From Paragordius varius (taxonomy: Eukaryota > Animalia > Nematomorpha), in NCBI GenBank assembly GCA_964247055.1, contig OZ176051.1, positions 12,276,001 to 12,340,000 of the forward strand: DNA of 64,000 nt. The letters run 5' to 3'. A model generated the notes under the pieces. That model was not told where the DNA came from, did not search any database, and worked only from the letters and a program-made list of their open reading frames with translations. Both the position numbers and the translations under genes were made by a program. The first letter of the stretch is position 1, and each line of letters begins with the position of its first letter. Positions 18,692 through 59,727 of this stretch are shown here, in pieces.

Positions 18692-19011
18692 TCATTTGGC
18701 ACGTCTCGGTATCCGGGTTCGTCTAATACGCGGCGTTCTTCTGCTAATTGTTCGGGGGGTTCTTGATCGCATTCTTGCAGTTCTTGAAGTGAATTTTCTA
18801 GTTACTCTTCTTGTTCTAGCTCTTGTTCTGAAAAACTTAGTGAACCGCGTATTTTTGGTCCGTCTACTTCTTGGCGTTCGCCTACGAGTAAAGCGTCTGG
18901 GCGTTCTTGATCTTCGACGATTTGTTCGAATAGTAGTCCTCCTACTAGCTCTATTAGTACGACCACGTGTGAATAATCTCGTGAAACGTGTTCTTTTAAT
19001 CATCCTCGTGG
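18692..19011 (-). CDS. Gene A exon 4: Arg/Thr-rich cationic tail (105 codons plus stop)
   Basis: Acceptor ttcttttag|CC ACG AGG ATG. Reads (A)TRMIKRTRFTRLFTRGRTNRASRR...TPRIRRTRIPRRAK*, about 42 Arg and no D/E. Homologous to gene C exon 4. Confidence 0.85.
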
Positions 19012-19095
19012 CTAAAAGAATAAATACAGTATAATCTTTAATATTAATATAAATATGTTGACACCACATGAAAAGGGTTACATTTATCTTAAAAC

Positions 19096-19425
19096 CTCTT
19101 GTCACAACAGTAGAAGTAATGGGTGTCATTGCATCTGTGACAGCACTACCTGTAGATTGAGTAGTCTCCAAAGTGGTAATTAACGGAATAATATTAGAAG
19201 CTGGGGAAGTTATGGAAGTAGATGCTGTTGTTATCAAAGTTCTTGATGTTGTAGCTGTGGTAGGCGTAGTTAACCTAATTGTTGTCGTAGGAGTGGTTGG
19301 AGTGGTTGGAGTGGTTGGTGTCGTAGGTGTCGTAGGCGTTGTGGGTGTCGTAGGTGTCGTGGGTGTCGTAGGCGTTGTGGGTGTTGTAGGCGTTGTGGGT
19401 GTCGTAGGTGTAGTTGAATTTCCAC
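19096..19425 (-). CDS. Gene A exon 3: Thr/Pro mucin-like stalk, about 14 PTT triplets
   Basis: Acceptor catag|GT GGA AAT TCA ACT; donor ACA AGA G|gtttta. 330 nt, phase 1-1, open frame, NST sequon at the start. An 84-nt intron follows. Confidence 0.85.
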
Positions 19426-20269
19426 CTATGCATATGTAAAGTTAATATTATCACTTACACAGTAAACAAAATCCAGAGCGGGATGGAGGGGGGGCAAATT
19501 ATAATGAAATATATATAAATATAAGTATTCAATATTATCTTAGCGTTTTTGGGCCATACGACTGATAGAAAAAAAATTTAATACTTCCTTTGTGTTAATT
19601 GCTGCATAAATATCGCAAAATTTATCACATTTATCATAAACATAATCTCAAGTTATAATTTAGTACTGATTTATCACAGGCCCGAGTATGCGATTACTAT
19701 TGTTTAAACCTCCAATATAAAATCCCTTTCATGTTAAGTCCATTTTATTATATAGATTTATATATAATATCCAATTACAGGTTGTAATATCTTAGTTCAA
19801 ATAGCAAAACAAATGGTTTAGCGGGCCGAAACAATTGGCATTCGCATATATGGGCATTGACAAATATTTTGTTAAAAACTGTAAACTAGTATTTATATTA
19901 AATATCTTTGTTGGTTCATTGCCGAGGAAGTTTAAGAAAATCAATTTTACTTAGGTTTTCTAAAGCGTCTTAATTTAACAAAACCGCTATCCCGCCTTCC
20001 ACTAGAGACAACTAATGTAGAGAGTGAAGTGTTAATCAGAAAAAAGACTTATCCGTGGCGAAAATATAAAAATAAATAGGAAAATACTAAAAGTAGCTAC
20101 CAAAAATGAAAAAACTCTGAAAAGAGGTTAATAAAAGCTTTTTTTGACAAATCATTAGTCACATTGCGAATCGAAATTTAGAAATATTAGCAAAGAATTA
20201 GAAAATTCTTATGGGCCTCTATATTTCAGAACAGGCAAATGTATTAAAAAGATTACACGTATGATATGG

Positions 20270-20520
20270 ATAGTAATAGTATGAAGGAAAAAGCAAATGA
20301 ATTGATTTGGCCGCGTATAAATAACTACACCGAGGAATGGGTTAAATCTTGCCAAAATTGCCAACTCAAACCGCCCCAATATCAACCCAAGCATTTTAAT
20401 GGAGTTAAAATAGAATTTGGGTATACTGCATTTAGGTATCGTATTACTCGTCGGCGACTGATATTGGATCGTTGTAATAGATATCTATACCTGATGTATT
20501 TAGGTAAAATAACGAAAACG
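20270..20520 (+). mobile_element. Gypsy integrase zinc-binding remnant in gene A intron 2
   Basis: MKEKANELIWPRINNYTEEWVKSCQNCQL matches the pattern MK..AR..VWWP.I..DIE..VK.C..CQ of Gypsy integrase H2C2 regions. Confidence 0.6.
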
Positions 20521-22199
20521 GTAACTTCTTTATTGTCAATTTTTCAGAAAAAGGGTTCGTACATTTCGAGTTTCCAACAAAACAATAGATAATGCGTCTG
20601 GGAGAATCGAACTTATGTAGTATTTAGGACACAAAAATTTGTCTCTAAAACTCCATCCTAATACAACATAGCCAGATGCTGAGACAGCCCATGCCAAATC
20701 TTCAGATGTCAGTAGCGAGTACCGTTTGGAAAAACCGGTTACAGCGCAAGGGACGAAGGAAATAAAAGAACAAGAGCAAAGGTACCCAACACGAATGCGA
20801 AGGCCTCGCCATAAATTCAGAGAGGAGATGATGATAGAATATGCAAAGTATATATATATATATATATGCAATGATAATGCCGTTTCGATTTGTTCGCATG
20901 AAAAATATTTATACTTTCATAATATTATATTGTATAAATTGCACACTGTGAACATGCAAACAATGTATGGATATATATGCAAATGTGTTTCAACATTCAA
21001 GTATAGTACAAGATAATGATATTTTAGTTGTTTAATAAATTCACTCTTTTTACTTCTCAGTTTAGAATCTAATGAATTATTTATGAATGCCCATATATAT
21101 TTCAAAGCGGCCGTCGTTTTTTGAGTTGAAGCTGTTGCCCGCGAGCCATTATTGAGGGACAACTTTTTGTTTAAAAGAAATGAATGACGGTTTTTTGGAA
21201 GTATATTAAATTTGATAAAATACCAGGTGCATAAGTTATTACGGTTTAACTAAGAGATGACGTCATGGAAAGGATGCAAACGATTATTTTAAAATAGCCC
21301 GCATTGTATCTGATAGTTAACCAAAAAATTAGCTTGTTATATTCAATAAACGTGTCGAATTTTGTGCCTAAAAACATTTATGGCAGGCATTGTCATCAGT
21401 AGAATAAAGCTTTTAAAAGTTTTTGTTTGCGGGTATAAACATATGGTGATGCTTTCGATTACACATGTGAAACATGATTTCGAAATATTAACAGTTGTGA
21501 GTGCGGGACCTCTGGTGGACAATACTAGGAAGCGACTATATTGCAGGAATTATGGGACGGTGACCCAGGTCCAATTTAACAAAAAATGGCAGACGCATTA
21601 CATATATGCTAGTAGTAGTTGTTTTGGAGCAATGTGAAACATTCGAATGATATCAAATTGAAAATCGCAAAGCTTGTGAAATCCTGTCCAACGTCATGAA
21701 AATTTTTTATTATTGTATCGAATTAGGATGGGTGTTGTAAATCCAAAGGGGAAAAATTGAGGCTTTCATCTTGTCAAGCCGTTCTTTATACAATCAGGTA
21801 AAATCACTTCAGCAAGAAAAGCAAGCTCTATATATGCGAAACTAAACTAGGGCAGTTTGGTATATCAACTTTTAAGGTCATCTGAAGTTAATATATAACA
21901 CTATCACTAACATAGCCAATTAAAACATGAATAGAAAACAACCGCAATGACCAGAAAGCATGACAAAACGATTTTGCTACATTTCAATACTTTGTTTTGC
22001 TGACAATTAGTGAAAGATACCTTGAAAGCGCTTCTATGGGAATTTTTTACGACCTGTTGTACTCTAATCGGCACACCCTCGCCGAGCAGCTTTTCAATAA
22101 TTAAGAAGACGTTGGAAAATTGGTTTTCCGCAAAAGTAAATCAATATTAGTAATTAATTAAAAAAATTATTTTAATATATATCATAAAAATATTTTGTG

Positions 22200-23600
22200 T
22201 TTTAAGTATGTTAACGAAAAACATTTTTTTATAATCTAAATTCTAATGAAAACCCTAATTATATAATTTTAGGCTATTTATTAATTGTAAATATCTGAAA
22301 AAATGATGATAACTCTTAACATATCAAGTTTTATTATATTATTTTTTTAATTATCCATAATTTTCACTTTTTTCCCAATTTCGATTTTTCCTCAGTCGTC
22401 AACAAATTAAATTTTTTGCAGCAAATAAATTAGTTGTTTAGAACCTATCGCATGAAAAAAAAATTTTGTTAAATTTTTTTTGCAAATGTTAGCTCATAGG
22501 TAAAAAAAGGGGAATCCGATAAATTTATCCATAATGTTTTACTATAATTTTAAATATTTTGATTATTTATTTATATTTTGGGAATTTACCGCGATCCAAG
22601 TGTAGGTACAAATAGATTATTCTGAGAAAAATATGAAATTTTTATTATACTATCCTAAGTTAAAAAACACAATATGAAAAACAATTCTTATGAAAATTAT
22701 TTTACAACGGCTTCTACACATTTGGCTCATTCCTTATAACATTCTTATTTAGAGTAAAAATAGCTTATATATCAAAATAAAATTGAAAAAATATTGTTTT
22801 TTATTTTTTCACCTTTTGTCATCCGGTTTATGAGTCTATAATAAATTTACTGCTTTATTTAATTTACATGAGCCGGATATACAATGTATATAGTTTATTA
22901 ACTAATGGAATATCGGACAAGAAATTAACATAAATAACTATAAAACCGAAAATCCATATAAACGCCAGTAATATATTAATTTGTCTTAAAACGAACTTGT
23001 TACTGGGATTTGTACGGATTTTCGGTTGATATTCTACTACTTGTAAATCCTATCTTGCATTAAAATATACACTTTGTAAATCCTGGTCATGTAGAATTCA
23101 AAAATAAAATAATAAATTTATTATAGACTCATAAACCAGATGATAAAATGAAAAAATAAAAAATAATATTATATTAATTTATTTGGATAAATAATTTATT
23201 TTAATAAATTAAGAATAAGATTTTAATATGAGTTAAGCTAATAAATATTTTTAAAAAATATTTTAATATATTTTTAAAAAGAATTTTTACGATAGGTATG
23301 TTTACGAAAAAACATGATTTTTTAATCTGAAATTTTATGAAAACCCTAATATAATTTTAGGCCTTTTATAAATTGTAAATATCTGTAGAATGATAATAAA
23401 TCTTAATATATTAAGTTATATCATTATTTTTTAATATCCTTAATTATCCAATTTTCACTTTTTGCCCAATTTCGATTTTCTTCTAATATTTCAAAAACCA
23501 GGTTGCCAACAAATTAATTATCCGGCAAATGAATTTATGTAAGCTATCTCATGAAAAAAAATTTTTTGTTAAAAAAATTGATCCTCTTTTTTTGCACGTG
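22200..23600. repeat. Fragments of the palindromic MITE family seen intact at 47461-48625
   Basis: Direct duplicate blocks (aaaccctaat...ttttcactttt..ccaatttcgatttt) at ~22240-22400 and ~23340-23480. Inverted pair atgagtctat/atagactcat at ~22830/23125. Confidence 0.6.
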
Positions 23601-24487: not shown

Positions 24488-24646
24488 CTTCGCAAGTATA
24501 ACATCCAGTTGCAGCAATAATTCTGTAAACGAAACCAGGGGGACAACGAGGTCCACCGCAATAAGCTACTACAAAGCATGAACAATCGCATTTTGCAATT
24601 AAAAAGGTATCACAATAATTTGTGCATGTTCTTGTACATTGAAGCG
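24488..24646 (-). CDS. Gene A exon 2: 10-Cys domain
   Basis: Acceptor ttattttag|CG CTT CAA TGT; donor GAA G|gtattg. Reads (T)LQCTRTCTNYCDTFLIAKCDCSCFVVAYCGGPRCPPGFVYRIIAATGCYTCE; Cys spacing is identical in all three copies. Confidence 0.9.
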
Positions 24647-24790
24647 CTAAAATAAATTTATAATAAGGATATTTCGAAACCCTTAAAATGGGATTTTTTA
24701 TATAAATTATATGATGTCAAAATGTCTAAAAATTAATTGATCATAATGGTTAAAATAATAGTTATACAAATAGCAACAATACAAATTTAC

Positions 24791-24878
24791 TTTTTCTCCC
24801 AAACATAGAACCATATTCATTGGTATCCACTGGCAAATTATAACATAGAAATAATAAAAAATATTGTTTAAAAATCAT
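24791..24878 (-). CDS. Gene A exon 1: putative signal peptide and short propeptide
   Basis: MIFKQYFLLFLCYNLPVDTNEYGSMFGRK, then A|gtaaat (phase 1). Same frame and donor position as gene C exon 1. Confidence 0.8.
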
Positions 24879-25011
24879 TTAATAAAAACTTTAATATAAT
24901 AAATTGTGAATTTTATTATGATAGTATCAGGCAATTACATTTGGCACAATGGCCGTCTTTAATAATTTATATTCGGTTAATCAGATATTGTTATCTTATG
25001 AAAATGACAAA

Positions 25012-25020
25012 CCAAGGTCA
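25012..25020 (+). promoter_or_regulatory. CCAAGGTCA extended nuclear-receptor half-site upstream of gene A
   Basis: Matches YCAAGGTCA (FTZ-F1/NR5A, ERR-type consensus) and has the same orientation relative to the gene in all three copies. Confidence 0.45.
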
Positions 25021-26584
25021 AAAGTTACTAACCTCTGACAATCCAACAATAGAGTCAATAAATTTAATAATATCGTAGCGTGATGATAATTTTTAAAATA
25101 CCACTATAAGGCAATTTTTATACCAATGACCTTTTATTATTGGAAAATATTTGTGTCTTCTCTTAATTCAAAACATTTTTAATGTTTATTATTAACACTT
25201 CTCACCTTAAGCATTAATATCATATTTCATATTCATAGACAATGCTTAATAAATTGGGAAATAATATCCTGATGAAATAATATTCTGATACAGAAATGTA
25301 GTAGGATTATTATGGTGTTTGCCCTTACGTAGTGATCTAAGAAAGTTATTTATACTATTATGGTAGCTGCTCCCTTTAAAAAAATGTCAAAATTGCGCAT
25401 TTTGTTAAATAAGTTAATTTGCTGAAAGCCAAATGCTTCATTCAATGAATATTCACTAAAATATATAATATAGACTGCACATAGTAAAATTTTAATTTTA
25501 GGTGTGGACCCAAAAGACTCAATTTTTTTACCCTTCTAAAATGGGGTAGTTCTTTTAAAACAAACGCAAAAATGGTGATATTTTGTGATAAAGCTTGTAA
25601 ATGTATGCGATGATTTTGACATCAAATAAGTTTTTTTGAAAAATGGATATTTTGCTAAAATCTAATTTTAACAAAATTTTGCGGAAGCGCACATACTATT
25701 TTGGAGATGGAAATATTATAAATAACTTTAAGCTATTATAAAAGTATTTTTTATTGATTCGAAACATTTCTATCCCATCAGAATTTTATTCAAGGGTTTG
25801 TTTGCTTTTAAATTTATTATTCAATTCTAAGGTTAAAGAGATGTTCAGCATCCTCAAATTGTGTAGACAAAGTGTTTTTATATATCATAAAGCGTTTTTA
25901 TATCGTTTCTAATTTAGATCTTTTTGAGAAATAATTAATACAAAAATTACATTTACCCATGTATAATAACACTCATGTAAAATATAAAATAGTCGAGAAA
26001 TGATAAATCGTTCTTATTATTCAATATCATAGGCGTTTCAAGTACCCTACAAAATATCTAAGATTATATCTATCTTATTAAAGTAAATTTATTTTTCAAT
26101 AATATATTTAATGAATTGATGTGCAAACACTTTTAATTTTGGTTATAGCAGGGGCAACACAGCTATCTTCGCAACTGATAATTTTTGGTTTGTTTATTTA
26201 TTTTGAGTATATTTTCTATATAATCGTAAATTTTTAATCAAAACCCAATTTTTTGTTTTTTAACATTTTTTAGAGCGCTTTTACGTACTGAAAAAATCGT
26301 GTACACCCCTGGCTTAAAGCATATACAAAGGACTTTCTAGTATTTTAAAGCATTATCAAATAATGATATTTATTTTGCTACCTTTTGAATAATATTATAA
26401 TACTAGGTGCCAATTCTATTCGTCGAAACAAAATATTAGACAAAATAGTAATACTAATTCAGTAGAATAATTTCTTTTTCAAAAAATGCCTTAAAGCATT
26501 TTTATTTTTAGTCATTGCTTTAAATAAAAAATCCTACTATTTATTGATTCCATAAAAAAAGTTAGTCATGAGATAGGCTATGGT

Positions 26585-26611
26585 TGACCTTGAATTAAGG
26601 CCAATAAATTG
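26585..26611 (+). promoter_or_regulatory. TGACCTTGA site plus GGCCAATAAATTG block upstream of copy B
   Basis: Both motifs are also upstream of gene C (53011-53019, 53062-53074). Confidence 0.45.
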
Positions 26612-26685: not shown

Positions 26686-27072
26686 ATGACGATTTTTATA
26701 TATTACCTATTCTTGTTGCTTGCCTTTGGGGTCCAAAAATGGTTCAATGTTTGGAGAAAAATATATAGGATAAGTGCTATAATATTTTTGTGAATGTTAT
26801 AATTAAACTTTTAACAATTAAATATATTTAAGAGAGCTTATAAGAAGTTTGCTAAAAAATTTTAGCAAAACATTTTTTGAATACCTCACTAAATTACACT
26901 TATTCTAGCGCTTCAGTGTACAAGAACATGCACAAATTATTGTGATAGATATCTGCTTGCGAGATGCGATTGTAAATGTTATCCATTTCCTTATTGCTTT
27001 GGGGCCCGTTGTCTCACTGGTTTTGTTTATAGAGTAATTTCTACTGGTAGATGCTATACTTGTGAAGTTTAA
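26686..27072 (+). pseudogene. Copy B: truncated paralogue (exon-1-like 26686-~26773, Cys exon 26909-27072); pseudogene or Cys-only isoform
   Basis: Exon 1 reads MTIFIYYLFLLLAFGVQKWFNVWRK, with the homologous donor GT replaced by TA. Exon 2 is ttattctag|CG LQCTRTCTNYCDRYLLARCDCKCYPFPYCFGARCLTGFVYRVISTGRCYTCEV*, with all 10 Cys intact. No mucin or Arg exons were seen before gene C. Confidence 0.7.
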
Positions 27073-27341: not shown

Positions 27342-29258
27342 CACTGTGCAACACGATTTTTAGACCAGAGTGAAAATTACTACATCTTATAGAGAATTTT
27401 TTTCTGAAAATAATGATATATTTAATATTTTCCTAGCACATTTTCGCGAGCCGCTAAAAGGTTTCAAAAATCCAAAAACCATCAAAAATGCCTGTTTTTG
27501 TAACCCTATAATTTTTTGAATTTTATAGCTTATTAATTATTTTTTGGAGGATATTACAAATTATATTTTAAAATTCATGTAACATTTTAAAATTTTTAAA
27601 AGTCTCGACTACTTTTTGATTTATTTAGAAAAAACGAAACTTAGCTCCAAAAAAATAGCGTTTCAAAACAATGAAAAATTAAGAGACGTGCAGGCACCAT
27701 ACCATTTTTTATACACAACAAAATGGAAAAATTTCATGTTTAATTAAAAAATGTAAATATTAATTTTAGGAATAAATTAGTATATTTATAGTATAATTAA
27801 TAAAATAATAAATATATAATATTAATTTGATATATATTATTTATAAATAAGAAATACTTTTAAACATGCAAATTTATTTATATTATGTATTGTACGTGAT
27901 TATATGAATCATGATATTTTGTTTTTTAATATACGAAAGTTTTTTTCAACAAATAAAAATATAAACATGCAAATAAATATAAACTGAAATGTTGAACTAA
28001 CAGAGCAAAAAAGGCATTCATTTGTTTTTTTCTTTCATAATAAATATATTCGTATATTGTGTCTTAATTAAAAATATTTTAATATATTTATAATTTTGAA
28101 ATCATTTCTGTATTAAATTTTTTAAAACCTTAGTAGTTTATAAATAAATTTACTTTAAAATAATAACAAAAATATATAATAACATAATTGAAATATTACT
28201 AAAAATCATATAATATTAATTTAAATACAGAGTTTATTATCCATTAACATTAATAAATTTAAAAATATTATCATTTTATTAAATTTATTATTATAACATT
28301 AACACTTCGATTCAAATTGGGGTATCTAAATACCCCAGACTAAATTTAAATTAATATTTTTAAAAAATACAGAAGGAAACGGTCCCAATTTAAATTTATG
28401 CTTCTATCTTGATAAAAATTATATAAATATGCCAAAATATCTTGATAAAACTTTGTTTTGAAAAAAAAGTTCCATCTCAAACTACTTCGACGCCATTTTT
28501 ATTTTGCAAAATATCGTCTTCATTTGATTTTAAAGGTAAAACTAAAGCTAATTTTTTATATAATTTACATCTAACATTGATTGAAATAGAAAAGCGGTTT
28601 ATTTTGTATTATTTTTTAATTTTACAATTTGACACATGTCACGTTGACGAAATTTTTACCTTTGGGTTTAGCTTAAAATAAGTAATATCAAGTATTTTTG
28701 AAAATTTTTTATATATAAGTATTTGTTTTTAAAAAGGCCTGGGGTATCCAACTACCCCAATTTGAATCGAAGGACTAAAATGAGTGTGTTGTATCCAAGT
28801 GTTAAATATATATACTATTTTTCATATTTATAAAAAAGCAATTAAATTTTATTATTTTAGTAATGTATAATGAAAAGCTGTCAATCAAATGATGCCAGTA
28901 TGTCTCTTAATTTTTCATTGTTTTGAAACGCTATTTTTTTGGAGCTAAGTTTCGTTTTTTCCAAATAAATCAAAAAGTAGTAGAGACTTTTAAAAATTTT
29001 AAAATGTTACATGAATTTTAAAATATAATTTGTAATATCCTCCAAAAAATAATTAATAAGCTATAAAATTCAAAAAATTATAGGGTTACAAAAACAGGCA
29101 TTTTTGATGGTTTTTGGATTTTTGAAACCTTTTAGCGGCTCGCGAAAATGTGCTAGGAAAATATTAAATATATCATTATTTTCAGAAAAAAATTCTCTAT
29201 AAGATGTCGTAATTTTCACTTTGGTCTAAAAGAAAAGGATAAAATTTGTTGCACAGTG
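27342..29258. mobile_element. Non-autonomous DNA transposon with ~350-bp TIRs and TA TSD
   Basis: TA|CACTGTGCAAC...GTTGCACAGTG|TA. 27342-27700 is a near-perfect reverse complement of ~28905-29258. Confidence 0.85.
28303..28801. mobile_element. TTAA-flanked (piggyBac-like) MITE nested in the 27342-29258 element
   Basis: TTAA|CACTT...AAGTG|TTAA with subterminal inverted TTCGATTCAAATTGGGGTA. A second copy lies at 51245-51819. Confidence 0.8.
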
Positions 29259-34680: not shown

Positions 34681-37600
34681 TGTAGTAAATCGAGAAAGCG
34701 TAAAACTAATATTTATTGAGATACAAAAACTAAATTATATTAAGTTTGCGATGCTTATATACTTTTTGTGAATATAATATTTAAATCTTAAATAACATGT
34801 GCAGGTTAAATACAAAATTGATACAATTGTTTAACTCAAATATATAAGGTCATCAAAAATGTATTCAAATCTAATTTATAAATTTGTCCAATCTAAGGTT
34901 TGCTAACTTGATGTATTCAAATCTATCATATCTCCTTATCCAAATCCGAGCCGATCTGGTGCTTTTCTTTCCCTGAGAGGATATCTTCTTTCTCAGTTGT
35001 CTTTTCCGTTCTTATTTCAACCTGGGTGTCTTCTCGTTTTCTTTTTCTTTGATTTGGTCTTCCCCCACCTCCCGATTCTTGGTTGTAATACCTTCATCTG
35101 TTCGGTTTATCGTTAAATTTTCATCCTCCTCTCTGTCGCTCTCGAGTCCGGTCGGCCGTAATTGATCCGCATGCTTGCGAAGGTTCGATTTCCATTAACC
35201 GTGCACGAGAGTCCCTGTTCTCTCCAAAATTGAACCTTTTCTCCACCCTGAATTGATTTCATCTTTATGTACACTTCTTCGTCCGGTCTTAAAACTTGAT
35301 TGCGTATTATGTCGTCCTCTAATAGGTGTGAGGGTGTTTCTCTAACCCAAGAGAAGGGGGTATTAATAGTTCTTTTCAGAAATAAGTAATACGGGCATTC
35401 TTTTGTGGCGCTATGTACGGCGGAGCGATAACCCCATAACACTTGATTTATTTTTTTGTCAGGAGTCAGCTTAGAATCCGTTAGCGATTTATAGTGTGCT
35501 TTTAAGGTGTAAAGGACACGTTCCACCAGCCCATTTGTTCGTGGATGATAGGGGGCACTAGTGACATGTTTGATGTTTGCTCGTTGCAAGGAATCTGTAA
35601 AATCCTTCGATGCAAAAAATGATGCATTATCGGTAACTATTATTCGGGGAAACCCGTACCATACACACCAAATTTCTAACCAATGTAATATGTTTGCGGA
35701 ATTAACAGTTCTTAGCAATTCGGCTTCAACTCATCTGGAGCTACTATCGATAGCTACTAACCGATAAAACCCATCAATAGGACCGGCAATATCAAGATGT
35801 ATCCTTTCCCAGATACCCGTATTAAATTCCATTTGTACGTGGGATTGCTTTTTATGTTACTCCGGTTTAACTGACACCCCATACAAGATCTCACATAACT
35901 TTCGATGTCTTGGTTTATACCTGGTCAATAAACCCTTGCCTTGGCAGACTCTTTCATTACATTAGCCCCCAAATGTCCAACATGCAAAAATTTTAACTTT
36001 CGCAACGCCCTGGGAATAAACAGACGATCGCCCCAATACAACAAACCACATGATTCTTGTATTTTTCTTATACTCAATATCGAATTTATAATTGGAGCTG
36101 ACCAATCATTATGATGTAGGCCGCTTTTAATGTCATCAAAAACTCATCCCGTAATGTATTTTTTTTAATTCGCTCGTTTAAGTTGTCTGTTGTTAAAAGG
36201 GTGATTTGCCTGGGTGCTTGCTCCTCAACCTCCTCAGTCGGTTCTTCATATGATAGACGAGATAACCAATCCGCTTAATTTTCCGAACCATTAATATATT
36301 GTATATTAAAATTATAATCGGCTGTTCTGAGTATCCATCTTACTAATCTACTATTGTTAATATTACTTAGATCTCTCTTAAAGCCAAACTTGATTAGGGG
36401 TTTATGATCGGTTAAAAATACGAACTTTCTGCCATACACAAACATTTTAAATTTTTCTAGCGCATATAAAATTGCCCTTGCTTCTTTTTCAATCACCGAG
36501 AGATTTTGTTCTGCCTTCGCACATTTTCGAGACGCAAAAGCTATCGGCCGTTTTCCATCACTTGTCATATGTGATAAGACTGCTCCGAATCAATCATTCG
36601 ATGCGTCTGTTTCCAACACTAACGGAAGGTTCGGGTTAAACGGTATTAGACATAATGCATTACTGACCAACAGTTTAGCTTTATCAAAAACCATCTCTTC
36701 TTTTGTCGACCAACACCATTTCTTAGAGCCTGTAAGCGCACGTAAATCCGCGATCGTAGCATGCAAAGATGGAATAAAACTAGCGTGAAAATTTAATCCC
36801 AAAAAAGACCGGTGTGATGTTTTATTGGTGGGTGTCGGACAATTCAAAATTGCTTTTGCCTTTTCGTTAGTTTAATTCCTTTGTCTGAAATTATATATCC
36901 TAAGTATGTCACTGAGGAACGAGCTAATTGGATTTTATCCTTCTTTAATTTCAAACCTACAGCAGCTAATTTGTTCAACACTTTTTCTAAGTTATCCTTA
37001 TGCTCCATTACCGTTGTTCCACTAACAACTACATCATTTAAGTAAACCACCGTACCTGGACAATCTTTTAATAACCCATCCATAATTTGTTGAAATATCG
37101 TGGGTGCACTAGATATTCCAAATGGCAGTCTCTTAAATCGAAAAAGACCTATATGTGAACTAAACGTGAGTAAATGTTGATAATCTTGGTGTATCGGCAT
37201 TTGCCACTATGCTTCTTTTAGATCTAGGGTCGTAAAAACTTTTCCCTGCCCGATTTTGAACACTAACTGATCAAATGTAGGAATCAAATGATCGACAGAA
37301 AGACTTGGGTTAACAGTAACTCTAAAATCACCACATATGCGAATATCATTATCATTCTTTTTAACTATAACCAACGGAGTTACCCAGTCAATTCGTGTTT
37401 GCGAGGGGTTAATGGATTCTATGATACCCAGACTTTCAAGCCTATTTAATTCACTCACTGAAGCGGGATAGGTACCCTCCTGGCTGCAAATCTTTTAGGG
37501 AAATCCCTTTTTTGAGAAACAATTTGATGGGTGGTCCCGTCTAACACCTAATACTCTCACAGAACAATTCCTTAAATTTATTTAAATCCACGTAACTAAC

Positions 37601-38927
37601 ATTTTTTACATATGCAGCCTCAGGAAATCTACATTGAAAGCTTTTCATCCACGGTAAACCAAAAATGTTACCTCAATCCCCCCTGGTAACCATACATTCC
37701 AACTGTTTGACCATACCTTTCCATTTCACATCTACCATACATTGTCCCATCACCTCTACACCTTGCTGGTTGAACCCAACTATTGGACCCGCGGGAGCTA
37801 AGATCGGCCTCCCAATCTCCATCCACGTGCTCTTCCCAATCAATGATATTTGGGCTCCGGTATCGTACAACATACTCACCCAATGGCCATTCAGACTTGC
37901 TTGCGTTCGGGCTTCATTATTATTATTGTTACCATGAAGTCTATTAACGCGCCGGCAACACCTGCCAAAATGACCACGTCCTTTGCATCGATAACACTCC
38001 TTGTTTGAAGCGGGACACCAGTTGATCGCATGCACGTATCCACATTTTCCACACTTTTTTCTTATTATCATAACCTGCCTATTGTCGGGACCCTGATCCA
38101 GCAAACAACTGTCCACCTTTTCGTACGCCATTGTTATTTCTAGCAACATCTCCAACGTAACCGGTTTCCCATCAAACATTGCATCTGGAAATTTTGTGAA
38201 CAGATCTATTTCCAATCTTTTGAGTTGTAACCCTCCCACAAACCCATCTCTGATTCTTAGTATTGCATCTTGCCCAATGTTGCACCGGGCAACACATTCC
38301 TTTACTCGAATCAAATAATCCATCACTGATTCCGTGGCTTCCCTCCGGAGTTGCGTAAACTGGAACCTGCAAACACATTGTATGTCGGAGCAAATATTTT
38401 TTTCCAGCTGCTACCAAAGCATCCCACCCCACATCCTCTAACAGTACGGATAAAAGATTTTCTTCAACTTTGTATGGGATAGACCGATGTAGGCCAATAA
38501 TAAGTTTTTTTGTTTTGTCATCTCCTTGAATTAATTTCACTTTCAACATTTTATTTATATAATCGATATAATCATCAAAGCTAGTTGCGGGATCATATGC
38601 TTCCAGACTTAATTTCTCTATGCGCGAATGTAATGAGGTAAAAAAATCGACCGCGCCAAATGTAGTAAATCGAGAAACCGTAAAACAATAATATTTATTG
38701 AGGTATAATACAAAAACTAAGCTATATAAAGTTTGCGATGTTTATATACTTTTTGTGAATATAATATTTACATTTTAAACCAAAGTAAAATAACGTTGCA
38801 GGTTAAATGCAAAATTGATACAATTGTTTAACTCAAATATAAAAGGTCATCAAAAATGTATTCAAATCTAATATATAAATTTGTCCAATCTAAGGTTAGC
38901 TAACTTGATGTATTCAAATTTATCACA
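34681..38927 (-). mobile_element. Ty3/Gypsy (Mag-like) LTR retrotransposon copy 1, full-length but frameshifted
   Basis: LTRs at 34681-34930 and 38661-38927 (TG...CA; TA at the left copy). PBS TGGCGCGGTCG and PPT GGATAAGGAGA. Order gag (CGKCGYVHAINWC + CYRCKGRGHFGRC), PR (LYDTGA), RT (YLND), RNase H (LETDASN), IN (VTDNA). No matching TSD seen. Confidence 0.93.
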
Positions 38928-41825: not shown

Positions 41826-44800
41826 CCAAGGTTAGCTAACTGATGTATTCAAATCTATCATATCTCCTTATACGAATCCGAGTCGATCTGGTGCTTTTCT
41901 TTCCCTAAGAGGATATCTTCTTTCAGGTTCTTTCTCAGTTGTTATTTCCATTTTCATTTCAACCAATGTATCTTTCTCGTTTTCCTTTTTTGCTTCCCCC
42001 CACTTCCCGATTATTGGTTGTAATATTACATTCATCAGTTTGGTTTATCGTTGAACCACCATCATCTCCCTCTTCGCCCCTCTCGACGCCGGTGCGTAAT
42101 TGATCCGCATGTTTGCGAAGGGTTCGACTTCCATCTTTTACCGTGTAAGAGAGTACCCCTGTTTTCTTCAAAAATGAACCTTTCTCCACCCTGTATTGAT
42201 TTTATTCCTTATGTACACCTCTTCGTCCGGGGTGAAAACTTAATTGGGTATGATATCGTCATCTAATTGTTGCGAGGGTGTTTCCATAACTTAGGAGAAA
42301 GGGGTATTAAAATTTTTTTGAGGAATAAGATATACGGGAACTCCTTTGTGGCTCTATGTACGGTGGGGCGATAATCCCATAGCACTTGATTTATTTTTTT
42401 GTCAGATGGCAGCTTAGAATCCTTTAGCGATTTATAGTGTGCTTATAAGGTTAAATAGCACGTTCCACCAGCCCATTTGTTCGTGGATGATAGGGGGCAC
42501 TGGTGACATATTAAATGTTTGCTCGTTGCAAGGTGTCTTTAAAATCTTTTGATGCAAAATATGACGCATCATCGGTAACCATCATTCGGTGAAGCCCGTA
42601 CAAAACACCAAATTTCTAATCAATGTAATATGTTTGCGGAATTAACATTTCTTAGCAACTCGACTTCAACCCATCTGAAGCTATTATCGATAGCCACTAA
42701 CCAAAAAAACCCATCTATAGACCGGCAATATCCAGATGTATCCGTTTCCAGATACCCGTATTAAAATTCCATTTGTACGTGGGATTGTTTTTTATGTTAC
42801 TCCGGTTTAACTGACACCCCATAGAATATCTCACATAACTTTCAATGTCTTGCTTTATACCTGGCCAATAAACCATAGCCTTTAACAGACTCTTTCATCA
42901 CATTTGCCCCCGAATGTCCAACATGGAAAAATTTTAACGTTTTATTGCACAAAGCCCTGGGAATAATAAGACGATCGCCCCAATACAACAACCCATATGA
43001 TTCTTGTATTTTGTTTCATATAATCAATATTTTAAAAATTAGTGCTGACTAATCATTATATAGAGCCGCTTTTAATGTCATCCAAAACTCATCCCGCAAA
43101 GTAAATTCTTTAATTCGCTGTACATTTTAGTTGTCTGTTGTTAAAATGTTGATCTGCCTACTGGTTGTTTGCTCCTCAACCTCCTCAGTCGGTTCTTCAT
43201 ACGGTAGACAGATAACCAATCCGCCAAATTTTCTGAACCATTAATATATTGTATATTAAAATTATAATCGGCTGTTCTAAATATCCATCTTAATAATCTA
43301 CTATTGTTAATATTACTCAGACTCTTAAAGCCAAACAACTTGTTTAGGGGTTTATGATCGTTTAATAATATGAACTTGCCATACCCAAACATTTTAAACT
43401 TTTCTAGAGCATGTAAAATTATCCTTGCTTCTTTTTCAATCACCGGAAAATGTTTGTATGCCTTCTCACATTTTCGAGACGCAAAAGCCATCGGCCGTTT
43501 TCCATCACTTGTCATATGTAATAAGGCTCCGAATCCGTCATTCGATGCGTCTGTTTCCAGCACCAATGGAAGGTTCGGGTTAAACCGTATTAGACATAAT
43601 GCCCTACTCGTTAACAGTTTAGCTTTATCGAAAACCATCTCTTCTTTTGTCGATAAACACCATTTATTATTGTAAATCCGCGATCGTAGCATGCAAAGAT
43701 GGAATAAAACGAGCGTGAAAATTAATATTCCTAAGAAAGACCGGAGTGATGTCTTATTGGTAGGTGTAGGACAATTTAAATTTGCTTTTACTTTTCGTTA
43801 TCAGGTTTAATTCCTTTGTCTGAAATTATATATCCTAAGTATGACACTGAGGAACGAGCTAATTGGATTTTATCCTTCTTTAATTTCAAACCCACAGCAG
43901 CTAATTTGTTCAACACTTTTTCTAAGTTATCCTTATGCTCCATTACCGTTGTTCCACTAACAATTACATCATTTAAGTAAACCACCGTACCTGGACAATC
44001 TTTTAATAACCCATCCATAATTTGTTAAAATATCGTGGGTGCAGTAGAAATTTGAAAGAGTCTCTTAAATCGAAAAAGACCTATATGCGAACGTTAATAA
44101 ATGTTGATAATCTTGGTGGATGGGCATTTGCCATTACGTTTAGATCTAGTGTGGTAAAACCTTTCCCTCCCCGATTTTGAACACTAACTGATCAAACGTT
44201 GGAATCAAATGATCGACAGGTACCAAACTCGGTTTAACGGTAACTCTAAAATCCCCCATGCGAATATCGTTATCATTCTTCTTAACTATCACCAACGGTA
44301 CCCAGTCGATTCATGTTTGCGAGGGGTTTATGGCCTCAATCATACCCAGACTTTCAATTTTAATTCCCTCTCCACCTTAGACTGAAGGGGGATAGGAACC
44401 TTCCTACCTCAAAATTTGGCGATGCTACCTTTTTTGAGAAACAACTTGATGGGTGGTCCCGTTAATACCCAATACCCTCACAAAACAAATCCTTAAATTT
44501 ATTTAAATCCACACAATTAATATTTTTTACACAGACAGCATCTGGAAATCTAAATTAAAAACTTTTCATCTATGGTAACCCAAAAATGTTACCCCCCTGG
44601 TAACCATACATTCCAGCTGCTTGACCAAACCATTCCATTTAACATCTACCTCGCATTGACCCATCACCTCCACACCTTGATGGTTGAACCCAACTATTGG
44701 ACCCGCGGGTGCTAAGGTTGGACTTCCAATCTCCAGCCACGTGATTTTCCTAATCAATGATATTTAAGCTCTGGTTTCATACACCATCCTACCCAATGGC

Positions 44801-51244: not shown

Positions 51245-51819
51245 CACTTCGATATTGGGGTATCTAAATACCCCAGACTAAATTTGAATTAGGATTTTTA
51301 AAAAACTACTGATGAAAACGGTCTTGATTTAAATTTATGCTTCTATCCTAATAAAAGTTATATAAATATGCCAAAATATCTAAAAATTTTGTTTTGAAAA
51401 AAAAGTTCCATGTCAAACTACTTCGACGCCATTTTGATTTTACAAAATTTTTGCAAAATATCGTCTTCTTTTAATTTTAAGGGCAAAATTAAAACTAATT
51501 TTTTATGTAAATTACATCTAACATGGATAGAAATGGTAAAAGCTGTTTATTTTGTATTATTTTTCAATTTTACCATTGCACGCATGTCACGTTGACTAAA
51601 TTTTTACCTTTCGGTTTTAGCTTAAAATAAGTAATATCAAGTATTTTTGAATAAAATTTTTTATATATTTCGATTTATTAATGTTATATAGGTGCAAGAT
51701 TTTGCCATGTTTTTGATTCTTTCCATATTTTTTGAAGAATTTAATTTTAAACAGGTCTGGGGTATTGAACTACCCCAATTTGAATCGAAGGACTAAAATG
51801 AATGTGTTGTATCCAAGTG
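51245..51819. mobile_element. TTAA-flanked (piggyBac-like) MITE, second copy
   Basis: TTAA|CACTT...AAGTG|TTAA; colinear with 28303-28801. Confidence 0.8.
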
Positions 51820-53010
51820 TTAAATTTATTTGCTATTGGAAGGAAAAAATATCACAATTCGATTGACAAAACAAAATACTTTGACTTCATTATATTTTAT
51901 GTTCTTCATTTTTAATTTTACGAAAAAAATTTGTTTTTCTAGCAATTGGAATTCAACAATCGTTCGCAAATTATCTCCTTGCAGAGAGAAAATCTTACAT
52001 CCAAATTTTATTACTATTCATAATTTTAATTAAAATTAATATTATATACCTGAAGTCCCTGATATTCAATAAGCGACAGAAAAAATAGCTATTTTTTAAT
52101 TTTTTTTATTAACATAGTCCAAGTTTTAACCATTTTATTATTTGAAAAAGGAGGCATTTTTAGATACTCAACCTAGTAAAAAGGTCAACAACAGTAAATA
52201 TTTATAAAAATTCTTCCACAGAATTAGATGTGAAAAATAATGCAATATAATTTTATAATAATAAGGATAGATATTTTTGCGTTTGAGTGAATCTAATTCG
52301 AGTTATGAGTTGTTATACCTTGATCGAAATTGGTTAGCCAAAAAAAATACCTAAATAAATAGTTTAAGAATTGAAATTTTCGCACAATAGGATTTATATA
52401 CTCCAATTTGTACGAAAGTGTCATTTAGATTAACCATCATGATGTCTCAAATCTCTTCAAATTATATGATCCTACTCAATTACACTAAATTACAAAATGC
52501 GGATAAAACATAAATATAAAAAGACAAATACTTCTAAATAGTCATACTTTTTAATCTTAAATTAAAAATATAACTTTGCGAAATAGGAATTAGAGATGTA
52601 AATGCTAATGCGCTCAATTATATAATTTATTGTAAAATCTAGGTTAAATTTAGTTCTTTCATAGTTAATTACTATGTGTTAATATTATGAAACCTGCAAA
52701 AAAGTTTTTTATTTTGGTCTATAGTCAAAATCTAGTATTTTGAAGCATATTTTAATATTAATTAATCTACCTCAGTTATCCAATATGCATAGGATAATAT
52801 ATTATTTTGAGCCAAATATTGTTCAACACTTTATTATTAGAAATGGATTACAAAATACTGTTATTATAGTGTCATACATCAAATGAAAGGTAATTTTTTG
52901 GTAAAAAACTGCCTTAAGGCGTTACCTTTGTCATCAAGCTTTAAATAAATAATATTCTATTAATTTTTGACCTATAAAATAGAGTTAGGTGTCATGAGAT
53001 AGACAAAATT

Positions 53011-53074
53011 TGACCTTGAATCGTCATTTATTCGACATTGTTAAAAAAAATATCAATCTATGGCCAATAAATTG
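53011..53074 (+). promoter_or_regulatory. TGACCTTGA site and GGCCAATAAATTG block upstream of gene C
   Basis: Conserved with copy B, and the NR site also with gene A. Confidence 0.45.
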
Positions 53075-53144: not shown

Positions 53145-53226
53145 ATGACGATTAAACGATACCTATTCTTATTGCTGTGTTTACCTTTGGGGTCCATGGA
53201 GTACGGTTTAATGTTTGGGAGAAAAA
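53145..53226 (+). CDS. Gene C exon 1: putative signal peptide and short propeptide
   Basis: MTIKRYLFLLLCLPLGSMEYGLMFGRK, then A|gtaatt (phase 1). Confidence 0.8.
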
Positions 53227-54800: not shown

Positions 54801-54962
54801 CGCTTCAATGTTCAAGAACATGCACGACTTATTGTGATACCTATCTCCTTGCAAAATGCGATTGTTCATGTTATCCATTCCCTTATTGCGGGGCGGCCCA
54901 GTGTCCCACTGGCTTTGTTTATAGAATAAATTCTGTGTCCGGATGCTATACTTGTGAAGGAG
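54801..54962 (+). CDS. Gene C exon 2: 10-Cys domain
   Basis: cttaatatag|CG CTT CAA TGT ... GAA GGA G|gttaat. Reads (T)LQCSRTCTTYCDTYLLAKCDCSCYPFPYCGAAQCPTGFVYRINSVSGCYTCEG. Confidence 0.9.
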
Positions 54963-56676
54963 GTTAATATTCATTTATTTTTTATTTTATAAATTTTAAA
55001 GATAATAATCAATTGTACTAATAATAATTAAATATATAAAATTCCTTGTACTATAAACGAACTGTAATAGAAAAATAATGTCCCACATAATAAAATATTT
55101 AATATAAATAAAAAGTTAAAAGGGAATCAATTTGCCTATAGAGTCTACAGAGAACCGATCCACGAGGTGGCCAGCTTTAAAATGTTATTGACATATTAAT
55201 CGTTATTTAAGCGTTGGATATGATACGTAGATACACGACATGGTATATTTTTTATTAGTACTACCTTATCACGGTGAATTCATTAGCGATCAAAGCTGTA
55301 TTCAGTTGTATAAGACTCAGTTTCTGATTATTATATGAAATGAAAAAAAAACAAACGAATGTATTTAATCCTCAAATGGGGTTTAATTAGCTGGGTATTA
55401 AAAGATTTATATTATTAGTAGGTGCATTATTCGATTACATCGTTATTATATAACGAAAAAGATATTTAATAAAAATATTGTCGTAGATCGAGATTGTAAA
55501 TTGTAAATAGATTGGAGAGACAACTTTTGATTCAAACATCTCTTAAAATAATGCATTGTGGAAAGAACCAGGGGAGCCCTAACAATTTATGTAAATCGAT
55601 TACCGAAATATTGTATTTTTATCCAACTTAATATTTTTATCGATAGAGTCTTTAATCATCTAAAATCTTGGATACTGAAAATGTATGCAAGAGTTTAAAT
55701 ATGTTTAATGTATAATATTTTGATTGAACCTTTTAAATTGGATATAATTTTTTGTTTAAATTATTAAATCTCATAATATCACTTCATTTATGTCCATTAC
55801 CATATTGGAAATGTTTCGAATCTCATTTTTTATATAATGCGCAGTCACGCCATGGTTTAATTTAGAATTTAACCGATCACTACGTTTACAATATATAGAG
55901 GATAAATTTAAATTATATGTGTGTTAAGCCGATTTAAATTGAGTTCGACTTGTGAGTATGAACCATACTCTCAATCCAATCATAACGGTTTTATACAATT
56001 TGTTTTGGTTCTTAGATATTTTAGTTCCATATTTTTATATACTCGTCCATCTGATCTAAGTCATTGACCAGGCATTGTTGATATTTTTGCGAAGTCTTCC
56101 GGCCTAGTTAGACTGAAGTAAGAGGTATCCCGTGAATTAAGTGCAGTTAGGGTGGGTTTAAAATATTAATGTTAGCATATCCTAATTACTCCATATAAAA
56201 TTAACTTCTCCAAACCAAGGTCTCAATTTTATTGGTTTTTGCAGCGACCATGAGCCGCAGCTGGTTTTAGCAAATATATTACGATTTCTTGATTTTAGTC
56301 CTAAAAATGGCCCAAAAAAGTTGATATTTATATATTTTTATCTATATTTAATATTTTATCGCTATAAATTTTAAAATCACAACCCTACTTTTAATTAAAT
56401 TATTTTCTAATAATTTGATTAATTCTTAAATAACAGCAAGTATATTTCTTATTGCTCTTAGGAAATAGTATTAATATCATATAAAAGGTGTGAGTGAATT
56501 TGCACTTTAGTTTTTATATCTAATCTATTAAAGAGCAAGGAGGGTACAAACCTATAAAGACTTGGGGATCCCCTCATCTACCATAATGCAGTCATAAAAA
56601 TAAGGCAATATCAAGTTTGTTAGTGTACGAATAGTCCTAATCAATATTTTTATGTTTTTAAAAATAATAATTATAG

Positions 56677-57006
56677 CCCCAACTACTCCGACTATACCTA
56701 CCACACCATCTACGCCCTCACCCACTACGCCTACGCCAACGACACCTTCAACGCCTAGCCCTACTACGCCTACACCTACGACACCATCTACGCCCTCACC
56801 CACTACGCCTAGAGCCACAACTCTAAGTCCTACTACTCCGGTTCCTACTACACCAACACCTACAACTCCTGCACCTACTACTTCTGCAACAACTTTAAGG
56901 ACTTTGATAACAACACCGTCGAGTACACCAATTCCTATTGTTACTGTTCCTATAGTAACGACTCAATCGACAAGTGCTATTGATACTACTACTGCTGTGA
57001 CAAGAG
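56677..57006 (+). CDS. Gene C exon 3: Thr/Pro/Ser mucin-like stalk
   Basis: ttatag|CC CCA ACT ... ACA AGA G|gtttct. 330 nt, phase 1-1, with TTPSTPSPTTPTP-type repeats. Shares RTLITT and VTR with gene A exon 3. Confidence 0.85.
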
Positions 57007-57751
57007 GTTTCTTTTTTATTTTAAGAATTAATAAATGTGATTTGATCTGTATATATTACTATTAAAATTTACTAAGAAAACGGTCATGTGAGACAACCTC
57101 TCTCGCCATAGTATTCTGCTTATGGCATCTGACATTATATTTTAGCTCTCGCTTTATTGTGTTCTTTCACTTCGTTTTAGGGCACGTCTTTGTTTACAAC
57201 TTAACTGTCTATAGTTTTGGTAGACAATTTTACCGTTTTGCTTCAAAGCTTGAAGAACGATTAACTTATCAGCATACATAGAACACCAAACTTTTAATAT
57301 TTTGACCACATCATCCACACACGATAAATGACAACGGACTAATTAAGCGATGAACCACAAGGCATTTTGCAAAGGGTTTTGACATTAGTTTAGGAGTTTC
57401 AATTTAGGAGGTGTAATTATGCATAATTTATAATAATTTTACATAGTTTTTTACCACATATTTACGACGGTAAAATTGATATTTTCTAGAATCCTGTCGC
57501 GCGCTTTTCTATGTCAGTTAATATCTTGGTTATTAATTCTCTTGCTGTGAATCAATCATGCTAGTAACTTGTATAGTGTATATTCAGTTTCCTGGCATAA
57601 AATCAAATTGCTTAATATAGCTAATTTTTTAATGTTTTTTTAAATTATGTCCAACAATTTTATCGTGTACAAAAGCATTGATTCCTAACTAGAAAACTCA
57701 TTTATACCCCGAGAAGTTTATCTCTCATTACTATCTAAGTTCTATTTACTA

Positions 57752-58808
57752 CCGCGTCTTATAAAAAGTAACCCAATGAAAGATATATACTCTAATAGGA
57801 AAATTTATCACGATTATTATGGCGCTTTTGGTGTTGGCCCTTACGTGACTTAAGCAAGTTATTTATACATTTGTGGTAAGTGCTCCATATCAGAAAAGGC
57901 CAAAATTTGCGCACATCTTGAAAAAATTTTTTCGTAGAGGCTTTACCAATTACCAAAATATATTATAAAGCCAAACATTATTTCCAAAAATTTTAATTTT
58001 TAGATCTGAGAAAGTCCAAATTTTTGCAATATGCTAGTCCATATTAAATAAACCCAAAATTGTACGATATAAATTTTTATGAACGAAAAATTTACAAAAT
58101 GAATACTTCTTTTCAAAATCTAATTTTAGTGAAATTTTGTTAAAGCGTATATCTAGTCTTTTGAGTCATGATAACGGATAATGTCCTTTAAAATATCATC
58201 AAAACATTTTTTTCGATAATGCTGAACATTTTTTATCATCTCAGAATTATGATTATATTATTCGTTCTTCTTCATTATGTTAAATCAACAATGTGTAACC
58301 AAATTTTTAAGCCAACGAACCTTTAAATAAAAATCCTAAAATAATAGAAATATTTAGCATCTCTAATAATATAGAAATGATTTTATAAAACCTCAAAGCC
58401 TAAAAATTATATTTTTGAAAAAAGTTTGCATATTTTAAATAATGTAAGTGGATATACAAAAGCGTATATTTAAAGAAATTTGGCGCAATCCCGGCATTTT
58501 ATATTCTAACTCATTTTAGAAGCACAAAAAAATTTTGGAATTTTTGGAGCCCACATCTAAAAATTATTTTTTTGAAGTTTCGCTTTTTATATGTAGTTAA
58601 TGATATATTTTAGTGAAAGTTTTAGGAATGAATCCTCTAGCTTTTTATAAAAAATATGCGCAATTTTGCCATTTTCTGATATGGACCACTTGCCACAGTG
58701 TAAATATCTTTCTTTAAATATTTGTTAGGGTAAAAACCAAAAGCACCATGATAATCCTGATACATTCTCCTATCAGATGTATTTCATCATGTTTTTTTGT
58801 GGACACTG
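57752..58808. mobile_element. TA-flanked Tc1/mariner-like MITE with long imperfect TIRs in gene C intron 3
   Basis: Right end GGACACTG|TA, left end TA|CCGCGTC. About 160 bp of inverted similarity (gattattatggcgcttttgg / ccaaaagcaccatgataatc). Related sequence lies at ~25260-25400. Confidence 0.7.
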
Positions 58809-59377
58809 TATATCTATCATCTTTCTTACAACGTGTTTATTTGTCAAAGGCCTTAACTTTCAGGATTTTATTGTTTTCTGTATACATTAAAAATGAAACT
58901 TACCGCCATTCAGTAATTAAGATGGTTTAGACTTAAGATTATCCACACTTGATAGGCTTTTAGATAAGATAATAGGTTTAAGCGGGATTAATAGGTTATT
59001 TTTTTATCTCAAAAAACGTGTCTGCTATAGCGAGATATATTCCATTTCTTTTTCCATAGGAATACTTTGCCATATTTTAAATTATTATTCACTTGAACTA
59101 AAAGGAATATTAAATTTCAAAAGAATGCCTTCATGCGCTGAGGTAGGCTTTCTTATTTTTTTTCATGTCCTTGCAAACCTTTATTGCTGCTTTCATTTTT
59201 GAATATGATTACAATTTAGGATTTATAAGTTAAGTTAGGTCAGTTGTTAACAGAGTTTATTTTTTAATCTTTTAAAGACGTAATTAAGGTATTTTCAGTA
59301 AATTTTACCTTTAATTTTCAAATTTATTGACATAATTTTATTCTTACAAGATTATTTTGATATAATTTATTTTATAG

Positions 59378-59727
59378 CCACAACGGTAATTAGAAGAACA
59401 CGTTTTACAAGATTATTTACGCGAGCTAGAACTAGCCGAGTTTCTAGGAGAAGGAGAACTACTAGAAATCGTCGACGATCAAGAACACCTGGGTTATTCA
59501 CTCGTAGGCGAACACCAAGAGTTAGACGGACCAGAAATACACGTTTTACAAGAATATCTAGAACCAGAGCCCGAACTAGAAGAATAACTAGAAAAATGAC
59601 TAGAAGAGTTACGCTAAGAACTCCAAGACTGCGATCAAGAACAACTCGCTTAATCAGGAGAACCCCTCGTGTGATAAGCAAGAGAACGACTCGTGTCAGA
59701 CGAACTTTGCCGAGACGTGTGAAATAA
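59378..59727 (+). CDS. Gene C exon 4: Arg/Thr-rich cationic tail
   Basis: ttttatag|CC ACA ACG GTA. Reads (A)TTVIRRTRFTRLFTRARTSRVSRRRRTTRNRRRSRTPG...RVRRTLPRRVK*, about 47 Arg in 116 aa and no D/E. Confidence 0.85.

Follow-up and report, generated by a model that had tools for sequence, protein, structure and literature searches.

The surface coat of the parasitic worm Toxocara canis is labile and charged, and its TES-120 mucins (MUC-1 to MUC-5) carry a Ser/Thr/Pro mucin domain that varies between paralogues, flanked by small conserved Cys-rich domains (PMC3611597). Ticks secrete basic-tail proteins (BTSP; Salp14, Ixonnexin and relatives), which act as anticoagulants and complement inhibitors and consist of a Cys-containing head followed by a C-terminal basic Lys/Arg tail (PMC6607933). 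Here, we analyzed 64,000 nucleotides (nt) of the genome of the horsehair worm Paragordius varius (Nematomorpha; assembly GCA_964247055.1, contig OZ176051.1, positions 12,276,001 to 12,340,000 of the forward strand), hereafter the window, in which an earlier note made from the sequence alone had pointed out a three-member gene family, with two complete members, A and C, and a truncated copy, B. Horsehair worms are among the least studied phyla, and little is known at the molecular level of their cuticle, egg strings, larval cyst wall and host-facing secretions.

We propose that the family consists of two functional paralogues, A and C, and a decayed partial duplicate, B, and that it encodes a lineage-restricted, secreted mucin-like glycoprotein that would be bound through its tail to polyanions of an extracellular coat or matrix; from the sequence evidence, we judge the chances of this interpretation to be about even. 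The proposal is based on intact gene models, on ratios of nonsynonymous to synonymous substitution rates (dN/dS) of 0.24-0.38 per module, on the restriction of the alignment between the two loci to the exons and on the invariance of ten cysteines. It also takes into account the signal-peptide-like N-terminus in proteins with no second segment of transmembrane strength, the mucin-type stalk and the acid-free, duplicated Arg tail, as well as a block (TTGACCTTG) shared upstream of the three copies and the analogy with the TES-120 mucins of Toxocara.

Gene models and coding constraint

Both complete genes assemble exactly at the splice junctions proposed in the earlier note. Gene A (minus strand) and gene C (plus strand) each comprise four exons, amounting to 897 nt for a protein of 298 amino acids (aa) plus a stop codon in A, and to 924 nt for 307 aa plus a stop codon in C. 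Their features are as follows.

24791-24878, minus strand: gene A exon 1, with the ATG, a signal-peptide-like segment and NEYGSMFGRK; phase-1 donor GTAAAT
24488-24646, minus strand: gene A exon 2, 10-Cys domain; symmetric 1-1 exon
19096-19425, minus strand: gene A exon 3, Thr/Pro stalk (47% Thr, 16% Pro) with a 9/18-nt (TTP)n tandem array
19012-19095, minus strand: gene A intron 3, 84 nt, GT..AG, in frame and stop-free
18692-19011, minus strand: gene A exon 4, Arg/Thr tail of 106 aa with 42 Arg, no Asp/Glu and a net charge of +47; stop codon
18547-18552, minus strand: candidate poly(A) signal of gene A, the first of the AATAAA/ATTAAA type, ~140 nt past the stop
53145-53226, plus strand: gene C exon 1, with the ATG, a signal-peptide-like segment and MEYGLMFGRK; phase-1 donor
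54801-54962, plus strand: gene C exon 2, 10-Cys domain
56677-57006, plus strand: gene C exon 3, Thr/Pro/Ser stalk (41% Thr, 25% Pro) with a 39-nt tandem unit
59378-59727, plus strand: gene C exon 4, Arg/Thr tail of 116 aa with 47 Arg, no Asp/Glu and a net charge of +50; stop codon
59800-59805, plus strand: candidate poly(A) signal AATAAA of gene C, 73 nt past the stop

The six introns of A and C all start with GT, end with an acceptor of the (T/A)TAG type and are in phase 1 (6/6), so that exons 2 and 3 form symmetric 1-1 modules. Symmetric 1-1 exons are the classic pattern of shuffled extracellular modules. The intron positions and phases of the two genes had been described as identical, which holds for the phases only: in C, where exon 2 measures 162 nt versus 159 nt in A, intron 2 is placed one codon further downstream, and the positions are thus equivalent rather than strictly identical. 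Intron 3 is 2371 nt long in C versus 84 nt in A. As the short intron of A is in frame and stop-free, its retention would insert 28 aa (GFKINVTLFMWCQ...) and would not truncate the protein.

The other statements of the earlier note on the genes fared well too. The protein layout that it gave (a signal-peptide-like start, EYGxMFGRK, a 10-Cys head, a Thr/Pro stalk and a tail with about 40% Arg) was recovered, composition included; the frames are indeed open amid transposable elements (TEs) riddled with stops, the rest of the window being decayed debris of long terminal repeat (LTR) retroelements with short open reading frames (ORFs); and the truncated third copy is real, with an exon-1 remnant and an open exon 2.

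The A and C proteins share 58% identity across their full length. The comparison of their coding sequences that the note had suggested gave, with the Nei-Gojobori method, an overall dN/dS of 0.29, well below 1, for a dS of ~0.95; by module, the values were 0.27 for exon 1, 0.26 for the Cys domain, 0.38 for the stalk and 0.24 for the tail, which supports purifying selection on the coding sequence of both genes. Between the A and C loci, blastn aligned the four exons and otherwise just a few dispersed repeats, and in these alignments the exons stand out as conserved islands amid diverged, TE-filled DNA. When the Cys domains of A, B and C were aligned, 29 of the 52 columns were invariant, including all ten Cys, which are therefore kept in copy B as well, and 23 varied; the chance of all ten Cys being invariant was estimated at ~0.001 (hypergeometric).

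Long antisense open frames lie over the tail and stalk exons (18696-19034, plus strand; 59367-59681, minus strand; 56552-56818, minus strand). They result from the Arg/Thr/Pro codon composition of these exons and are not evidence for antisense genes.

Protein layout, relatives and a proposed tether

Examined by eye and with a script, the N-termini open with a basic n-region that leads into a hydrophobic core, and positions -1 and -3 are taken by small residues (PLGS followed by M in C, PVDT followed by N in A); in C, the core reaches a maximum of 1.58 in a 19-residue Kyte-Doolittle window. A hydropathy scan found no second hydrophobic segment of transmembrane strength past the N-terminus in either protein. 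The EYGxMFGRK motif, identical between A and C at 8 of 9 positions, begins one residue past the predicted, and likely, signal cleavage site. It is followed by a head of 52-53 aa with the cysteine spacing C-x3-C-x3-C-x7-C-x-C-x-C-x5-C-x4-C-x13-C-x2-C.

The stalk counts 110 aa in both proteins, with 41-47% Thr, 16-25% Pro and 8-11% Ser, and is in both a long Pro/Thr/Ser-rich tandem-repeat domain, a feature of the mucin class. The two stalks do not share their tandem units: that of A is a 9/18-nt (TTP)n array, that of C repeats a unit of 39 nt. The repeats have thus turned over, with length and composition maintained. Fast-evolving mucin domains likewise have differing tandem units.

The tail (106 aa in A, 116 aa in C) is composed of 40-41% Arg and 22% Thr and is devoid of Asp and Glu, for a net charge of +47 and +50, respectively. 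It consists of an internal duplication of a unit of ~47 aa, as indicated by local alignment of one half against the other (z = 8.1 in A and 3.7 in C, relative to shuffles). Each unit starts with TRFT(R/K), continues with an Arg-rich stretch and ends with RSRTP…RRTPR, and the spacing between basic residues rarely exceeds 4.

The earlier note had recognized no known family with such an architecture, and this is borne out by the Pfam, PDB, profile, word-indexed, metagenome and viral searches, all of which came back empty; their queries were single exons, the collections cover eukaryotes unevenly and unannotated hairworm genomes are outside their reach. No Pfam-A family was found with hmmscan using all exon translations and the three copies of the Cys domain (E <= 10). 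Among Cys-rich families, the head matched none of TIL, VWC, ShK/SXC, EGF, antistasin, granulin, IGFBP-N and WAP, nor chitin-binding peritrophin-A, PTN/MK or the lustrin Cys repeat. Sequence and profile searches of the PDB gave as sole match 14 residues of the RuBisCO small subunit (E 0.81), attributable to chance. A profile of the three heads, run against 1.84 billion representative proteins, likewise had a single match (P0001), which was rejected because it is a translated tandem repeat that has this 8-residue word, CTIYCDTF, in common with the heads and contains it 29 times. Word-indexed protein searches found no relative of the C tail, the C Cys domain or a read-through ORF of A. The latter query, scored on its tail, is the stop-free ORF running from exon 3 through intron 3 to exon 4, and its length of 243 aa places relatives of ~300 aa within the length range. 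No match was obtained in metagenome contigs with the Cys-domain profile, nor in viral contigs with the head and tail profiles, which were used to test an origin from viral arginine-rich motifs or cys-motifs, and exact-product look-ups of the three ORFs that a prokaryote-style gene caller could plausibly predict returned no record. Annotation pipelines miss families of this kind because the genes are small, their exons of low complexity and their introns long and TE-filled. Orphan secreted families are common in parasites.

The family falls in the general kind of modular secreted mucins with a Cys-rich domain, its unusual feature being the long, duplicated, acid-free arginine tail. The likeness to the TES-120 mucins lies in the combination of a paralogue-variable mucin domain with a small conserved Cys-rich domain in a parasitic worm. 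However, the Cys modules of Toxocara are six-cysteine ShKT/SXC domains, whereas the head described here has 10 Cys and no Pfam match, ShK included; moreover, the Toxocara mucins have no poly-Arg tail and a sequence relationship to the family is undetectable. Tick basic tails are short and mostly made of Lys, whereas the A and C tails span 106-116 aa, with 40% Arg and a duplicated unit, and the tick proteins lack a mucin stalk. No BTSP member emerged as a homologue of the head in the search of 1.84 billion proteins, which yielded only the spurious tandem-repeat ORF. The family belongs to neither group, and by analogy of layout both are its nearest functional analogues.

From these features we infer that the protein is secreted and glycosylated, that it binds polyanions, and where it is located. 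Its hydrophobic N-terminus would lead it into the secretory pathway, the 52-53-residue head would fold around five disulfides, and the 110-residue Thr/Pro segment would be densely O-glycosylated, giving a stiff, extended stalk. The acid-free Arg/Thr tail, with its charge of +47 to +50 and its two ~47-aa units, may then bind by electrostatic attraction to polyanions such as sulfated glycans, anionic lipids or an acidic layer (epicuticle, surface coat or eggshell), and once the tail is fixed the stalk and head would project outwards. The most likely setting would be one of the worm's extracellular coats or matrices, such as its surface coat or cuticle, the eggshell or the adhesive of the egg strings. 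The tethering model of the earlier note is a reasonable inference, as are the cuticle, eggshell, cement, defence and effector roles that it listed.

Several observations weigh against a tether of this type. The signal-peptide-like core of gene A is short. With 13-16 dibasic pairs and 3-5 sites of the furin type (R-x-[KR]-R), the tails might be cut up in the secretory pathway instead of surviving as an anchor. The S/T-P-R-x motifs and the protamine-like composition of the tail are more typical of nuclear DNA-binding proteins. The AlphaFold2 model of the head, computed from a three-sequence alignment, is of low confidence (mean predicted local distance difference test, pLDDT, 46; predicted template modelling score, pTM, 0.26) and comprises only a C-terminal beta-hairpin; that of the tail (pLDDT 53) has one low-confidence helix per repeat unit. 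Finally, the promoter motif discussed below is a mere 9-mer matched to a consensus.

A conserved, duplicated family with an unrecognised 10-Cys domain and a long Arg tail is a concrete candidate for the little-known nematomorph structures listed above; it is clearly delimited and constrained, and lends itself to testing. It would be an unusual case of an extracellular protamine-like polycation and, should the tail prove to be an anchor or a cell-entry module, would be relevant to parasitology, biomaterials and adhesion research.

Alternative functions

Instead of a structural role, the proteins could have a host-directed effector or antimicrobial function, in which the poly-Arg tail would be a membrane-binding or cell-penetrating polycation that takes the head to the membranes of microbes or to cells of the host, much as tick salivary proteins are directed to anionic surfaces by their basic tails. 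We regard this as possible, though far from probable. A secreted-type architecture with an extreme, acid-free cationic tail would suit such a role, an orphan family that is duplicated and has one copy decaying is typical of parasite effector families, and the tick basic-tail proteins provide a precedent for a Cys-rich head with a basic tail in parasite secretion (PMC6607933). However, dN/dS values of 0.24-0.29 point to purifying selection, not to the diversifying selection usual in effectors, and a 110-aa mucin stalk is unexpected on a protein that enters cells. The tail was also scanned for the periodicity of an amphipathic helix or strand: its hydrophobic-moment profiles did not rise above those of shuffled controls and thus give no indication of a membrane-active, amphipathic helix.

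A broader and rather unlikely proposal, made from the sequences, would place A and C in an undescribed class of secreted proteins of a behaviour-manipulating parasite, in which a novel five-disulfide head and a glycosylated stalk would be joined to a duplicated, protamine-like poly-Arg module acting outside the cell, where it would either anchor a surface coat of a new kind to polyanions or penetrate cells and deliver the head into host tissue.

The strong conservation of EYGxMFGRK, which contrasts with the diverged signal segment preceding it, raises the question of whether the proteins are prohormone-like precursors. Signal cleavage, cleavage at R-K and amidation at Gly would release a heptapeptide, xEYGxMF-amide, possibly sulfated on Tyr, with the Cys domain and the glycosylated stalk as carriers in a layout resembling that of hormone, neurophysin and copeptin; we find this doubtful. 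In its favor, the motif begins one residue after the likely signal cleavage site, G-R-K is a classical signal for amidation and dibasic processing (a reading absent from the earlier note), and Y-G-x-M-F-amide superficially resembles the C-terminus of gastrin, cholecystokinin (CCK) and sulfakinin (SK), whose precursors share with A and C an acidic residue before Tyr, a hydrophobic M-F end and Gly followed by a dibasic pair. The sequence M-F-G-R-K, a C-terminal Phe followed by Gly and a basic site, is present in A and C and broken in B. On the other hand, R-K is one of the rarer processing pairs, the likeness was spotted post hoc on a 5-residue motif, and no neuropeptide precursor is known to combine a mucin stalk with a 110-aa poly-Arg tail, both under purifying selection. 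The putative peptide also differs from those of the gastrin/CCK/sulfakinin precursors in directly following the signal peptide, and the 10-Cys domain, the mucin stalk and the poly-Arg tail have no counterpart in them. A precursor of the SK/CCK/gastrin type proper was rejected, as four residues (G, L/S, M, F) separate Tyr from the amide-donor Gly, versus five to seven in SK/CCK-type peptides (PMC8428848).

It is very unlikely that the proteins are protamine-like nucleic-acid binders, using the Arg/Thr tail to condense nucleic acids (DNA or RNA), for instance those of sperm; the hydrophobic N-terminus would then not be a functional signal peptide. The tail, with 40% Arg, no acidic residue and repeated RTPR and RSRTP motifs, does resemble protamines, sperm nuclear basic proteins and viral arginine-rich motifs, which share its very high Arg content, lack of acids and S/T-P-R motifs. 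Yet these are nuclear or virion-internal and are devoid of signal peptides, disulfide domains and mucin stalks, and the A and C tails have neither a Pfam match nor a relative in viral contigs. The hydrophobic N-terminus, the 10-Cys domain, which needs an oxidising compartment, and the Thr/Pro stalk instead point to the secretory pathway, and the tail exon of C cannot be a separate gene, since no start codon is present in it close to the 5' end.

That the genes are non-functional, either chance open frames in low-complexity DNA or two dead copies, is hardly credible: the low-complexity exons do also hold open antisense frames, and no protein or transcript match was found in the databases searched, but the four exons are open in both copies with matching phases and GT..AG borders, dN/dS is ~0.29, the A-C indels are whole codons and the protein alignment runs through both full lengths, the exons are the sole conserved islands between the loci and their Cys are invariant, and with ~8% stops expected at the local base composition the chance of a 110-codon open frame is estimated at ~1e-4.

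Copy B, upstream blocks and surrounding DNA

Copy B is arranged head-to-head with gene A, 1.8 kb apart, and has kept the promoter region, an exon-1 remnant, a short intron and exon 2.

26687 to ~26763, plus strand: copy B exon-1 remnant; the ATG and hydrophobic start are kept, EYGxMFGRK is thrown out of frame by indels, and no GT donor is left
26909-27066, plus strand: copy B exon 2, open, with 10/10 Cys; a stop codon follows two codons after

No phase-1 donor is present after exon 2 of copy B, and exons 3 and 4 were sought within the window and not found. Its exon 2 is closer to that of C than to that of A (dS 0.34 versus 0.59-0.65), and its upstream region aligns with that of gene C. Between B and C, dN/dS is 0.53, with substitutions at Gly/Pro positions that are conserved in the other copies, a raised value that fits a relaxed constraint on copy B. 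In our reading of these alignments, B is probably a decaying partial duplicate of the 5' end of C. In addition, a stretch of ~270 nt is found, with 89% identity, downstream of copy B (28553-28819, plus strand) and upstream of gene C (51500-51837, plus strand); it may be either a dispersed repeat or a leftover of the duplication that produced B.

Two short blocks are common to the upstream regions of the three copies.

25013-25021, minus strand: TTGACCTTG, gene A, ~135 nt ahead of the ATG
26584-26592, plus strand: TTGACCTTG, copy B, ahead of the exon-1 remnant
53010-53018, plus strand: TTGACCTTG, gene C, ~130 nt ahead of the ATG
25107-25117, minus strand: AAAnTGCCTTA, gene A, at about -240
26483-26493, plus strand: AAAnTGCCTTA, copy B, at about -240
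52906-52916, plus strand: AAAnTGCCTTA, gene C, at about -240

The TTGACCTTG block is invariant in A, B and C, at about -100 to -135 from the ATGs, with diverged flanks, and AAAnTGCCTTA lies ~100 nt upstream of it in all three. The complement of the TTGACCTTG block fits the FTZ-F1/NHR-25 consensus [TC]CAAGGTCA. NR5A receptors are drivers of moulting and epidermal programmes in ecdysozoans. With the following base, A in B and C or G in A, the opposite strand reads TCAAGGTCA or CCAAGGTCA, and TCAAGGTCA is among the Ftz-F1 consensus sites used for assaying C. elegans NHR-25 (PMC3861103). A half-site of the FTZ-F1/NHR-25 type common to the three promoters hints that the genes may be regulated with the moulting cycle or in the epidermis, which we consider as a lead and not as evidence. 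The window contains four further copies of TTGACCTTG in unrelated contexts. Two of them, at 5951-5959 and 6171-6179 (minus strand), belong to a local repeat pair, ~220 nt apart, that is unrelated to the family promoters.

Scans of the window for Rfam families and tRNAs found nothing. Its base composition is 30% G+C, with zero N; this value and the heavy TE load agree with the 26.9% G+C and 64% repeats reported for the genome of another hairworm, Gordionus montsenyensis (10.1101/2023.06.26.546503). The LTR debris includes fragments of reverse transcriptase (RT), RNase H, integrase and aspartyl protease, the longest ORF reaching 217 aa. LTR-retrotransposon remains are listed below.

35113-38549, minus strand: LTR-retrotransposon remains
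43141-43692, minus strand: LTR-retrotransposon remains
20266-21637, plus strand: LTR-retrotransposon remains
11409-11660, plus strand: LTR-retrotransposon remains

These remains, all short broken ORFs, include integrase core, RT-RNase H and integrase zinc-binding fragments, and the piece at 20266-21637 sits within the 5-kb intron 2 of gene A.

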